The notes: a model not told the origin generated them from the sequence alone. DNA of 64,000 nucleotides from Hyaloraphidium curvatum SAG 235-1 (GCA_025558095.1 JAIVFI010000044.1:124001-188000); one strand, 5' to 3'. Shown: positions 27,807-33,200, counted from the stretch's first letter. Made by a program: numbers and translations.

Positions 27807-28128
27807 GTCTTCGGATGCCCGCTTTCGCTTTCGTGGAGCGGAGAGGGCGCAGAGCGTTGTTGACGCGGTCCCCGCCGCGGCAAAACACGCCGCCGCTGAC
27901 CAACCGCGCCGCCCAAAAGCCGGTCCGGACGCCTTCCGGGCTTCAATCCCGGGAGCATATTGCTCCGGAAGTTCTGTTCCCGTCGGGAACCCCGGTCTCG
28001 CTGCTCCGCAGCGGCAGGCGGGCGCTCGCATTCTTCCGCGCCGCCGGACGATCCCGCACGCGCATCGCGGCGCCACCCCCCCCTTTTGCCCCTCTTTCGC
28101 CTCCCGACTGCTCCAATAGTTCAACAAC

Positions 28129-29919
28129 ATGTTCACGGGCATCGTGGAGCACGTCGGCGAGGTCCTCGCCCTGGCCGAGTCCAACGGAAACAAAATCGTC
28201 ACGGTCGGCAACGCCGGGCCCGTGCTGGCCGACACCAAGGTCGGGGACCAGCTGAGCGTCAACGGTTGGCCTTTTCTGCGCGGACTTCGGGGGGGCGAGG
28301 CTGAACGGGGTCGACTCTAGGCGTCAGGCTCACGGTGCAGTCGATTGACGAGGCGAGGACGTCGTTCACGGTCAATGTCACGCCCGAGAGCGCGAGGAGG
28401 TCCAACCTCGGTAGGTCGTCGCGTGCTCGTGCTTTCATCGGCGCTCATCTGCCCTTTTGCGGTCAAGGCGAGCTCGAGGTCGTGACCCCGACCAGCGGCA
28501 TCGTCGGCAAGGTCAACCTGGAGCGCCCTCTCCACAAGGACTCGCGCTTCGGCGGGCACTTCGTCCAGGGCCACATCGACACGACCTCAACGATCGTTTC
28601 CATCGCCCCGGACCCGCCGGGGAGCTCCAAGATCTACACCTTCGAGATCCCCGCCGGCGGGCAGCCCGACCCCTTCGCCTACATCGTCCCCAAGGGCAAC
28701 ATCACCCTCGACGGCGCTTCGCTGACGGTCGTGGCGGTCGACGCCGCCAAGCGCACCTTCTCGATCCTCCTCACGCCCTACACGGCCGCGCACGTGACCC
28801 TCGGCGTCAAGCCCGTGGGCGCCAAGATCAACGTCGAGGTCGACGTGGTGGGAAAGTACGTCGAGAAGGTCGTCGGCAAGCTGCTCCAGTCCGGCGCGGA
28901 GCAGGCGTCGAGCTCCGCCGCGGCCGCCGTGGGCCCCGTGCTGACGGCGGACAAGGTGTCGGAGAAGGTGCAGGAGGTCATTGCGAGCTTCGCCACCAAC
29001 GAAGGGGATTCCCTCGGGAGCGACGTTGCCGTGCGGAGGGTGCTGGAGAACGTCGTCGAGGGCACAGTCCGGAACGTCCTGGGGGAGAAGGTCGTGGACG
29101 AGAGCCCGCGCTTCACCGGTGCCGAGGCGGCCAAGTCGTACCAGGATTCGCTCAAGAAGGCCCACGAGGTGGACGAGTTTGAGTTTGACGACATGGATGA
29201 GGCCTTGGCAGCTTTCGGTGGGCACGGCGTACTCACTGGTTAGCCGACGGTGACTGATCCCGTTGTTCTTAGCCAAGGGCGACTTCCTCATTGTCGTCGA
29301 CTCGATCGACCGCGAGAACGAAGGCGATCTGATCGCCGCCGCGCAGTTCATGACGCCCCAGAAGATGGCTTTCATGGTCCGGCACACCACGGGCATCATC
29401 TGCGTTCCCCTGCTTGCCGAACGGTGCGCGCAGCTCGGCCTGCCCCTGATGGTCCCGCCGAGCGGAAACAAGGAGTACATGGGGACGGCCTTCACGGTCA
29501 CGGTCGATCTGAAAAAGGGCACCACCACCGGCGTGTCGGCCAACGATCGGACGCTCACGGTCAAGGCGCTTGCGGACGAGGCCATCAGGGGAGAGGACTT
29601 TGTGATGCCTGGACACATTTTCCCCCTCATGTACCGCAAGGGCGGTGTTTTGAAGCGGACTGGACATACGGAAGCCGGTGTCGGTGAGTTTTCCACCGCG
29701 CGGACCCATCTTCTATTCTGAACGCTCCTCGCAGATCTCTGTAAGCTCACCAACCTCTACCCCGCCGGCGTCCTCTCGGAGATCGTCCTGGACAACGGGG
29801 AAATGGCCCGGCGCGACGATCTGAAGAAGCTGGCCAAGGAATGGGGCCTCAAGATGATCAGCATCGAGGACATGGCCAAGTACAGGATCAAGCACGGGTT
29901 CACCGGCGAGGACTGGTGA
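28129..29919 (+). CDS. Fusion of a riboflavin synthase-like domain (Rib5) and 3,4-dihydroxy-2-butanone-4-phosphate synthase (Rib3)
   Basis: MFTGIVE, VNLER, FGGHFVQGHID, KGNITLDGASLTV, INVEVDVVGKYVE, then DRENEGDLI, TAFTVTVD, TTTGVSANDR, PGHIFPL, GGVLKRTGHTEAGVDLC. Introns 28265-28320, 28411-28467, 29218-29272, 29684-29734. Confidence 0.92.
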
Positions 29920-30289
29920 CCGGGGCCACGGGTGGCGCGGCCAGGCGCTGCCGGCAGCATAGACCATCTGTTCCCTTTATGAACATGCTGCCTTGCTGCT
30001 TGAGACGTCTCCCGAAGCTTTGTGCTTGTGGGCGAGAGTACAGATCGAAGTCAAGAGGTGCTGCCAAACACACGCCGGCTGCCAATTCTCTCGCTACCCA
30101 GACGGCCTCGTCGGCCCGGGAGAATCCCGCGCCCGGTCGTCGGAGTTTTTCGCTCGACCCCGATCGAAAGCTGCGGCTGCCCTTTGCGGGCCGCCCGCCC
30201 CGCGCCGCGCAGGGCCGGGGTCAACAAGCCGCGCGGCGCCCGGAGCGCAACACCCAAACCCGCCATCGCGCCCGGAAAAAGGACCGCTC

Positions 30290-33200
30290 ATGGCATCGTA
30301 CTCTCCTGGAAGTGGTCGCGGAGGGTGGTCTTTCGGCAGCACGTCGCCGGGCCGGGGAACGGCGGGGCAAACAGTGCAGTCCTTGAACGCTGCGTCGGCC
30401 GGCGCCTCACCCTCGTACGGCTGGCCGCGCCCGCACGGCTTTGAGGTTTTCGCCGCTTCGGACGCTCTTTCTTCGCCAATCGGGGCGGCCGGATACCAGC
30501 CTGACCGGAACTCGGAAGGCGCGTCCGGGTCGCGGGGCGGCTCCCCTACCATTGGCATCGAGACCGGAGGGGGTCAACGTGGGGGTGCCGAGTACTCCCA
30601 CAACTCTCCTATGTCTCCCGGGCCCGGTTCGCCTCAAACTCATGTCGCGCTCGGGGTGGCGACGCTGCTGCGCGACGAACCGGATGTTGCTCGGAACCGG
30701 GAGAAGATCGCCTTCCTTTCCCTTCCGTGCAAGCAAAACGGCAAGGCTCCGGACAGCAACACTTCGGGAGGCCTCATGTCGAAGCTGCTGAAGAAGTCCA
30801 AGGATGTGAGTTCTGTCCGTTCGTTCTTTTTCGGTTCCGCTGACAAGCTTGCGCTCAGTCCGGTCAGTTCAAGGCTTCCGGGGACGTGGATTTCAAATCC
30901 ATGCTCTTGCCTTCTATCTTGGAGGCGGCCGCCGCCCCCGTCTACCCGTCGGACGACCGACAGTCCCGCCCTGCCTCTCCGGCCCGCAAGTCCTCGCCGG
31001 TCAGGGCGCCGTCTCGCTCCCCTTCCCCCTTCTCCATGAGCCGACAAAGAGGCAAATCGCGCGATTTCATGGAGGATGGCTCGGAAGACGAAGACGACTT
31101 CGGACTTCCGCCGCTACCTGGAAGGGCGAGCCGGGTGAGGAACCCGTCGACGGCCGCCATCACCTCCCCTTCGCGACGAGTGTCGTACGGCGTGGCCTCC
31201 CCCACTTCCCCTTCTCGGGGTCCCGCCATTCCCGACGAGTCGCAGTGGTTGGCTCTGAACCAGCTCCGGATCCATGCCGGCACGCCGGAGCGGAGCCCGC
31301 GCGGCGTGGAGCGGATCCTGCAGTACTTTGCCCAGCTGGAGTACCTGGAGAAAAAGTTTCCCTTCGAGAGTGGGCACTCGAAGATTCACGGCGGATTCCG
31401 TTGGTTTGAGGCCTTCGCGGACCAGAAGAGTGAGTATTCTCGACGGGCCTTGCGACTGCCCGTGCTAAAGCTGACCTCCGTCGCCGCAGTGTTTTCTTCG
31501 AACGCGCTCATCACGGATTGTATCCAGTACGAGAAAGGCGCGACCCTGTACAACCTGGCTGCTCTCTACTCGCAGTTGGGGTGCAGCTCCAGGTTGTGGA
31601 CTCCCGAGGGCTTGAAGGAGGCCGGCAACTACTTCCAAAAGGCAGCCGGAGTGCTCACCTATGTTCGGAACTCCCTCCAACCGCGCTTCCGAATCAAGCT
31701 CGAGAAGAGCTCGGACCTAAGCGAGCCCAGTCTGACCGCGGCGATTCAGCTCTGTTTGGCTCAGGCTTGCGAGTGCTTCTACGAGCGTGCCAACAAAGGT
31801 GGGCATTCTTGTACTTGCTCGCGACCTTTTCTCACACCAATCCTTTCAGATCAAACCAGCAAGAGCCTTTGCAAGGTCGCAGCGCAGACTGCAGACCTGT
31901 ACGAGCAAGCTCTGGATACCGCCCGCTCGATGCAGTCCAAGACCTGGGCGCGTTTCCCGGCGGAGTGGTTCGTGGTCTTGAGGTGCAAGCGGCTCCTCTT
32001 CCAGGCCATATCGCTCCTTCACACGGAGAACTCGCTCCCGGACCCCGTCAACACCGCCGTCGGAGAACGTGTCGCCCGGCTGCGGCTCTCGGTCGAAGCA
32101 GCGGAGCAGGCCGCCAAGGAGGCCAAGGCTCTCAAGTCGCCGTGGTCTGCCGGCCTCAAGATCCTGGTGCAGGAGTACCTCGAGCTCATGCTTTCGAGCT
32201 TCATGCTCGCGGAATCGGCCAACATGCAGAACTACCACCAGACGGAGCCGGATCGCCGGCTGCTCGCGCCTCCCCCGCGGCCCAAGGCGTCGCTCGTGGA
32301 GGCCTTCGACTTCAAGAGGGACATGCTTGGGGATGACACCCGCTTCATCGACTTGCTGGAGGGCGTGAAGGCGCCGCAGGTTTGGGGCGACTTCAACGGG
32401 TTCGCACAGTCGGCCAAGGAGACGGCTGCGTGGGGGGTGTTGGAGCTGCGGAAGGCGATGGATCTCGTCGAGAGCCGCCTCGGGAAGCTGGACATCAGGC
32501 TGGCCGGCACCGGGCACTACGAATCGGCTCCTATCCTGAGCAACTCGGCCTTGCTTGCGGCGGCCAATGCCGCTCAAGCAGTGCGGCAGGAGACGGACCA
32601 GGTCCTGGCAAAGCTTGTGGAGGCGCAAGCGGAAGAGTCCATGCTCGCCAGCACCGACGTTGTCGCCAAGCTCGAGGAGTTGCAGAAGTGGACTTCGAAG
32701 AACGTGGATGAGGTGAGAGAACGCCGAAGATTGGATGACCAAGCTGACTCGTCTTCGACAGAGCGTCTATATCCTGGACCACATCGATACCTCCAGCTTC
32801 CCGCAGGATCCTTCCGTGTTTACCCACGTCGGCAACTTGCGCAGCGCGGTCTCGCGCATTTCGTCGGAGCTCGGGGCCCGTGCCGAGGCGATCGCGGCAC
32901 TCAGGAACGAGTTTGCGTCCGTGGACCTCGACGTGCTGGAGTGGAACGAGGAGAAGCTCCAATCTGTCATTCCCATGCTGCAAAAGTCGAAGGACCTCAT
33001 CAAGCAGCACGTCAAGAGCTTCGACAGGGAAACCTGCATGCAGCGCGCCGAGGAGATCCGCCAGCAGTGCGAGGTCAAGATCCAGGAGCTCGTGTCTGTC
33101 GAATCCGACATTGGTGAGGAGTTCTTGCTAATCAGCCAAAAGCAAACTTACCCTTTTCGCCACGCCAGATACGGTCGGCCCCACCACCGATCTCCACGTC

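Follow-up and report, generated by a model that had tools for sequence, protein, structure and literature searches.

The 64,000-nucleotide stretch of DNA analyzed here (the window; JAIVFI010000044.1:124001-188000 of assembly GCA_025558095.1) comes from Hyaloraphidium curvatum SAG 235-1, which is placed in Monoblepharomycota. At positions 28129-29919 of its forward strand lies a gene of five exons that encodes a fusion protein of 523 amino acids, with riboflavin synthase (RS) as the first half and 3,4-dihydroxy-2-butanone 4-phosphate (DHBP) synthase (Rib3) as the second. The RS half carries Gln and Arg at the sites of Ser41 and Cys48, which are among the most conserved residues of the enzyme, and as a candidate for an enzyme half that has become a non-catalytic module, this RS copy on Rib3 is good, if unproven.

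The joined exons give 1572 nt, i.e., 523 codons and a stop, in one uninterrupted open frame. Exon 1 (28129-28264) runs from Met1, with MFTGIV at 28129-28146, to the first base of Gly46, whose codon is split in phase 1 by intron 1 (28265-28320; 56 nt, GT..AG); the position and phase of this intron match those in the canonical RIB5 of H. curvatum and of Gonapodya. Exon 2 (28321-28410), from VRLTV to PESARRSNL, encodes the middle of the N-terminal barrel (N-barrel) and is followed by intron 2 (28411-28467; 57 nt, GT..AG), which lies in phase 1 in the Gly codon after SNL and is also present in canonical RIB5. The long exon 3 (28468-29217) encodes the remainder of the N-barrel, including a lengthened loop, the C-terminal barrel (C-barrel), a helix, the RS tail, a connecting peptide, and the start of Rib3. 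Intron 3 (29218-29272; 55 nt) is in phase 1 in the codon after Phe325, exon 4 (29273-29683) encodes the DHBP synthase core, intron 4 (29684-29734; 51 nt) is in phase 1 in the Asp codon of GV/D/LCKL (slashes mark intron positions), and exon 5 (29735-29919) completes the DHBP synthase with a TGA stop at 29917-29919. Both of these later introns have the position and phase found in the fusion gene of Gonapodya prolifera described below.

A 1874-nt contig from a public run aligns to 28000-29966 with zero differing letters and skips exactly the four GT..AG introns. The RNA support consists of this one run, available as contigs, and its RNA label is a guess; because all four introns are missing from the contig, we conclude that it derives from spliced RNA, and because a single contig spans both the RS part and the Rib3 part, these are present on one mature mRNA in one frame. 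NCBI lists the gene as DFJ74DRAFT_598163 (P0004), a "partial" hypothetical protein of 210 amino acids, which equals exons 1 to 3 exactly except for a different splice of intron 2, where the donor is read through (..SNLGRSGIVGK..); this model ends inside the RS tail without any Rib3 and disagrees with the transcript contig at intron 2. The transcript contig supports the 523-amino acid fusion and corrects the public partial annotation. Another NCBI protein of H. curvatum agrees at 100% with a different locus of this genome. The partial NCBI model and its different splicing of intron 2 could be taken to mean that the locus is an artefact, arising from an error in sequencing or splicing or from a pseudogene in decay. 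The identity of transcript contig and genome, with all four introns defined, the 523-codon open frame, three orthologous loci with the same structure and the same Gln41, and a ratio of nonsynonymous to synonymous substitution rates (dN/dS) well under 1 all speak against this; the contig, the orthologous loci, and the dN/dS together refute it, and we have practically no doubt that the gene is real.

The window was searched exon by exon with Pfam. Lum_binding was found in the C-barrel of exon 3 with 62.8 bits and in the N-barrel exon with 18.7 bits, and a complete DHBP_synthase (profile positions 9-191) was matched with 188 bits in exon 4 and 48 bits in exon 5. The RS half matched the RS of Schizosaccharomyces pombe (1KZL) over its full length (E 7e-39, 42% identity). 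The Rib3 half begins with FEFDD.. at 29178 and has C. albicans 1TKS as its best solved relative (E 5e-41); all of its motifs (DRENEGDL, GTTTG, PGH within PGHIFPL, and GHTE within GHTEAGV, encoded by exon 4) are present, in agreement with the first-pass annotation, which had read this half as intact. For structure prediction, the single-chain RS half was represented by P0004, which is mis-spliced at intron 2 and eight residues shorter. Its AlphaFold model had a pLDDT (predicted local distance difference test) of 94 and a TM (template modeling) score of 0.88-0.91 to 1KZL, and it included a C-terminal helix at residues 195-209 predicted with high confidence. This helix, which forms the trimer in solved RS structures, is encoded from about 28836. 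A prediction of the complex of three copies of the same protein scored 0.06 (mark, 0.32), a result that speaks neither for nor against a trimer. The N-terminal motif MFTG, with Phe2, is free in the fusion (ATG at 28129, then FTGIV) and kept in all orthologues. The region that links the halves consists of a normal fungal RS tail, which extends to about 29099 (..RRVLENVVEGTVRNVLGEKV.. vs. ..LENVVRRVVKEEVEKAL.. in RIB5), and a connecting peptide of only about 26 new residues (29100-29177).

The spliced N-barrel of the fusion reads GDQLSVNG/VRLTV, and because the alignment to 1KZL is gapless through residue 48, the altered residues can be numbered directly, as Gln41 and Arg48, after the usual RS scheme. 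A Gln codon at 28249 and an Arg codon at 28326 had been pointed out in the first-pass annotation; they were confirmed in DNA and RNA as CAG (Gln41, 28249-28251) and AGG (Arg48, 28326-28328) on the forward strand, and the contig has AGG rather than TGC at 28326. Thus, in the motifs GxSxxxNG and NGxCLTV of trimeric RS, the fusion has Gln for the near-invariant Ser41 and Arg for the near-invariant Cys48. Both Ser41 and Cys48 were found in all of the ~295 other RS-like proteins compared, a set made up of RS from fungi, fusions from bacteria, and 150 representatives from clustering at 50% identity. In two of these, P0193 and P0310, which had appeared as further exceptions at 41 and 48, the regular expression had hit a part of the sequence before the motif, and the motif itself is canonical. 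The currently proposed RS mechanism includes a nucleophilic Cys (PMC13151069). The second motif of the N-barrel, ESARRSNL (28386-28409, in exon 2), departs from the canonical form at Thr67 (Ser) and Leu68 (Ala) only, a milder departure than first claimed, since ..RRSNL also occurs in the canonical fungal RS of Gonapodya. The other hallmarks of RS are retained, namely MFTGIV, the His pair of GGHFVQGH (28551-28574 in exon 3; His97 and His102 of E. coli in GGHxxxGH), and the C-barrel motif DGASLTV (28710-28730, DGxSLTV); the initial report that MFTGIV and both His are kept holds, and MFTG, the His pair, and DGxSLTV are invariant in the four taxa compared below.

Relatives were collected as exon-3-sized open reading frames in three Logan assemblies, which led to the syntenic loci L009, L010, and L011, all with the same exon structure as the fusion gene. 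The next gene behind the fusion encodes a BRO1 domain in the window (30886-33117), in L009 (L009:5325-6789), and in L010 (L010:5453-6831), and this conserved synteny confirms the orthology of the loci. Their N-barrels read GDQMSVNG/VSLTV (L009), GDQLSVNG/VSLTV (L010), and GDQLSVNG/VCVTV (L011). Gln41 is therefore fixed across four taxa, with CAG or CAA as its codon, and such strictness together with synonymous codon variation points to function and not to drift. Residue 48 is Arg (AGG) in the window, Ser (AGC) in L009 and L010, and Cys (TGC) in L011; three states require at least two changes at this site, and Arg48 is therefore lineage-specific. It follows that Arg48 cannot underlie a new function of the whole clade. 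Accordingly, the check suggested in the first-pass annotation, whether the substitutions are conserved in orthologues under purifying selection, came out positive for Gln41 (it is present in the three orthologues, at low dN/dS) and negative for Arg48. An exhaustive HMMER search with exon 3 gave no more than four proteins at E 1e-30 or better and added no Gln41 member to those from the three Logan assemblies.

To follow constraint along the RS half, we used the alignment columns with at least 93% conservation among 195 reference RS. From the region between the barrels through the C-barrel, all but two of these columns are kept in all four Gln41 taxa, including NLER, Arg, GGH..VQGH.D, KG, DG.SLTV, and N.E.D; of the two columns that differ, one has Thr instead of Ile throughout these taxa and the other shows a conservative Val/Ile exchange. 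MFTG, Gly46, and Thr50 are also retained. Nearly all of the other changes fall in the N-barrel, at Ser41, Cys48, Leu49 (one taxon), Phe61 (one taxon), Thr67, and Leu68, and in the loop that precedes VNLER, which is extended by 4 to 9 residues in the Gln41 taxa. Per-exon Nei-Gojobori estimates of dN/dS, with counts summed per exon, were 0.10-0.33 for the N-barrel, 0.05-0.15 for the C-barrel, 0.03-0.12 for the tail and linker, and 0.03-0.09 for Rib3, all of them rough values because dS is saturated. Fused and canonical RS were also compared between the same two genomes, i.e., that of the window and that of the organism with L010, whose sample also contains a canonical RIB5 with Ser41 and Cys48 (L012). 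In the N-barrel dN was 0.214 for the fused copy and 0.126 for canonical RIB5, while the corresponding values in the C-barrel were 0.121 and 0.096; the fused N-barrel thus evolves ~1.7 times faster than the canonical one. Far from decaying, the RS half is a well-folded RS whose remodelling is specific to the N-barrel half-site, and a canonical RS is kept beside it.

The fusion is not the only RIB5 of H. curvatum. When the 31.9-Mb assembly was searched in six frames with Lum_binding, three loci came out, i.e., the fusion, a second and canonical RIB5 on contig 14, and a strongly degenerate paralogue. The RIB5 of contig 14 reads GDSICCNG/VCLTV and AETIRKTNLG, with Ser41 and Cys48, and both of its N-barrel introns are identical in position and phase to introns 1 and 2 of the fusion. 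DHBP_synthase was found in the genome only in the fusion, whose Rib3 half is the sole DHBP synthase, and lumazine synthase (RIB4) is present. The degenerate paralogue (L003:1096-1917 on contig 17; DFJ74DRAFT_671608, P0240) has 274 amino acids and no introns, and nearly all of its catalytic and ligand residues are replaced (MFSG, GDAVLLAGIAGTV, GWHLVRGR, DGVALCAI), while a RIB5-like C-terminal ..ALKGKL is kept; no close orthologue of it was found, and in this GC-rich genome an open frame alone is insufficient proof of a gene.

Gonapodya prolifera, also a monoblepharid, possesses an RS-DHBP synthase fusion of 490 amino acids (P0008, M427DRAFT_51415) with canonical Ser41 and Cys48 (GDSINVNGVCLTV), and besides it a separate canonical RIB5 (P0005). 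Because the Gonapodya fusion is still canonical, the change of Ser41 to Gln arose after the fusion. In a maximum likelihood tree the fused RS halves fall inside the fungal RS clade (100/99), apart from the fusions of Rothia, Kocuria, and Curtobacterium. The canonical RIB5 of Gonapodya (L015) has the introns NG/V, NLG/, and VQ/GH; the Hyaloraphidium fusion keeps NG/V and NLG/, the Gonapodya fusion (L014) has only VQ/GH, and the canonical RIB5 of H. curvatum (L001) is without VQ/GH. Apparently the ancestral RIB5 had all three introns, which would have been lost differentially later. In the Rib3 half, two phase-1 introns are common to both fusions, one 12 codons into Rib3 and one in GV/D/LCKL. 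Because the RS half groups with fungal RS and its intron positions match those of RIB5, the fusion has an origin independent of the actinobacterial ones; a transfer from the latter was considered and is ruled out by the tree, by the introns in common with fungal RIB5, and by the fungal RS C-terminal tail. Judging from these comparisons, the fusion is a eukaryotic read-through of a duplicated RIB5 into RIB3 that predates the split between Gonapodya and Hyaloraphidium. The novelty of the architecture is also smaller than the first-pass annotation had implied: RibE-RibB(-RibA) fusions are abundant in Micrococcaceae, and the Gonapodya orthologue is canonical. Two further proteins with RS-like parts were seen in the collections searched. 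P0164 (EukProt, 567 amino acids) is a RibE-RibB-RibA triple fusion whose very long branch falls among fusions of bacterial type, and for which contamination or transfer is possible, and P0247 (representative library, 870 amino acids) has an RS-like C-barrel match at 712-857 in a different architecture.

From these data we propose the following course of events. The RS half would stem from an intron-bearing fungal RIB5 that was fused to RIB3, with Ser41 and Cys48 in place, already in the common ancestor of Gonapodya and Hyaloraphidium. In the Hyaloraphidium lineage the dismutase would have been supplied by the separate canonical RIB5, and the N-barrel half-site of the fused copy would have been remodelled: Ser41 was presumably replaced by a Gln that became fixed, Cys48 was freed to vary (Arg in H. 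curvatum), Thr67 and Leu68 drifted, and the loop before VNLER grew. Nearly all the rest of the RS half, namely MFTG, Thr50, both His, and the C-barrel bar two positions, would have stayed under purifying selection. On its own the fused RS half would then be a weak or dead dismutase, and what persists may be a folded module of RS type, carried along by an active Rib3 and still able to bind lumazine or riboflavin.

The S41A enzyme of E. coli is reported by Illarionov et al. in 2001 to be strongly slowed. Because Ser41 and Cys48 are both lost, because a Cys is the nucleophile in the proposed mechanism, and because of this slowing, the RS half is likely to be weak or dead. We give about an even chance to the reading that the fused RS half is a catalytically weakened or dead dismutase and that an active Rib3 retains it as a folded module, probably one that binds a ligand. 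Several points weigh against it. The RS reaction is largely a matter of substrate positioning, so that a Gln41 enzyme could retain useful activity; a working enzyme would equally be expected to conserve Gln41, MFTG, the His pair, and the C-barrel site strictly; Gln41 is known from only four taxa; and the saturation of dS noted above belongs here as well.

An alternative view is that the RS half is still an active dismutase, in which Gln41 stands in for Ser41 and residue 48 is not needed. The protein would then be a true bifunctional enzyme, bringing together two activities whose products, DHBP and the recycled pyrimidine, are both substrates of lumazine synthase, and RIB4 is indeed present in the genome. 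Its best argument is that Gln41, with its synonymous codons, and the remaining residues of the site are strictly conserved. In addition, hardly any of the other highly conserved RS residues have been lost (MFTG, both His, and DGxSLTV are among those retained), dN/dS is well under 1, the Gonapodya orthologue is canonical, and bacterial fusions that arose independently in the same domain order are presumably active. However, only Ser41 and Cys48 are tolerated in the ~295 other RS-like proteins, residue 48, Thr67, and Leu68 are variable only within the Gln41 clade, and the fused N-barrel evolves ~1.7 times faster than the canonical one. Moreover, a canonical RIB5 is kept alongside in at least two genomes, which argues that the fused copy is no replacement for it. 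We consider an active dismutase somewhat unlikely.

The first-pass annotation had gone further than a loss of activity and proposed a pseudo-enzyme sensor, in which the RS half would bind riboflavin or lumazine and feedback-regulate DHBP synthase; in the form weighed here, FMN is a further ligand, and the attached DHBP synthase would be inhibited by allosteric feedback. Such a sensor would fit the retention of ligand-site residues while catalytic ones were lost, as well as its location on the sole Rib3, which catalyzes a committed step. Inactive, ligand-binding RS paralogues are also known, such as lumazine protein with its Ser48 (PMC8272222), and structures of lumazine protein are among the fold matches of the RS half. 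Yet the connector is merely a normal RS tail with ~26 additional residues, and Arg48, on which the proposal partly relied, is not conserved. Furthermore, the N-barrel, which is the lone ligand site in lumazine protein, is the very part that has been remodelled, and it is the C-barrel that is better conserved in the fusion. Literature searches on this fusion or on the riboflavin genes of Hyaloraphidium and Gonapodya found nothing relevant, and no precedent for such a sensor was found in them. We think that feedback sensing by the RS half is improbable.

As a variant of the sensor idea, the fusion could recruit canonical RIB5 into a Rib3-Rib5 metabolon, in which mixed heterotrimers form an active site from the intact C-barrel of the fusion and the N-barrel of canonical RIB5, and Rib3 is tethered in this way to a working RS. 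Such an assembly would suit the good conservation of the C-barrel and C-terminal helix, the restriction of the changes to the N-barrel half-site, and the retention of canonical RIB5 in the same genome. The idea is purely inferential, however, and strikes us as improbable. A module that has lost most or all of its catalysis and is kept in folded form beside Rib3 is the reading that we prefer.

Few residues of RS are as conserved as Ser41 and Cys48, whose roles are still debated, and the fusion of H. curvatum is a natural, expressed, and selectively maintained RS without both of them. With a canonical paralogue in the same cell and a canonical orthologue in Gonapodya, it offers a ready comparison for the roles of the two residues. 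If the RS half is inactive, it is a eukaryotic example of a catalytic domain kept in non-catalytic form within a fused enzyme of a vitamin pathway, and it could reveal how riboflavin synthesis is controlled or channelled in a way that has not yet been described in fungi. If it is active, the "invariant" pair of Ser41 and Cys48 is dispensable, and if the sensor reading were true, the fusion would place riboflavin synthesis in a eukaryote under feedback control at the level of protein.

Compared with trimeric RS (RIB5/RibE/RibC; 1KZL and E. coli 1I8D), the RS half has the same two tandem lumazine-binding barrels and a predicted long C-terminal helix, and shares MFTG, Thr50, NLER, the His pair of GGH..QGH, and DGxSLTV in the C-barrel. 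Unlike trimeric RS, it has Gln41, Arg48, changed residues at 67 and 68, and a longer loop before VNLER, and its C-terminus runs on into DHBP synthase. The Gonapodya fusion P0008 resembles it in domain order, in a similar junction, in two common introns, and in being accompanied by a separate RIB5, but differs in having Ser41 and Cys48, in lacking the two N-barrel introns, and in having the VQ/GH intron. The bacterial RibE-RibB(-RibA) proteins of Rothia, Kocuria, and Curtobacterium also have Lum_binding followed by DHBP_synthase on one chain with a free MFTG N-terminus, whereas Ser41 and Cys48 are present in all of those sampled, their RS belongs to a separate clade (100/99), and their genes have no introns.

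Lumazine protein and the yellow and blue fluorescent proteins of luminous bacteria, which are enzymatically inactive but substrate-binding RS paralogues, share with the RS half a residue other than Cys at position 48 and the same fold (TM 0.75-0.80); the Ser48 of lumazine protein is the residue found in L009 and L010 (PMC8272222). Lumazine protein differs in being monomeric, in its 20% identity to the RS half, and in binding its ligand only in the N-barrel, while the fusion keeps a predicted C-terminal helix of RS type, is altered in the N-barrel, carries Rib3, and occurs in a fungal host without lux context. The bipartite GTP cyclohydrolase II/DHBP synthase proteins RIBA2 and RIBA3 of Arabidopsis have one dead half each, and a fully active paralogue exists (PMC3509567). 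The fusion is like them a fused protein of the riboflavin pathway in which one half has lost conserved catalytic residues in the presence of an active paralogue; the domains are different, and the loss of activity is experimental in Arabidopsis, whereas for the fusion it is inferred. Because inactive, ligand-binding RS paralogues and half-dead bipartite plant enzymes are both known, the fusion of H. curvatum is not a new kind of system.

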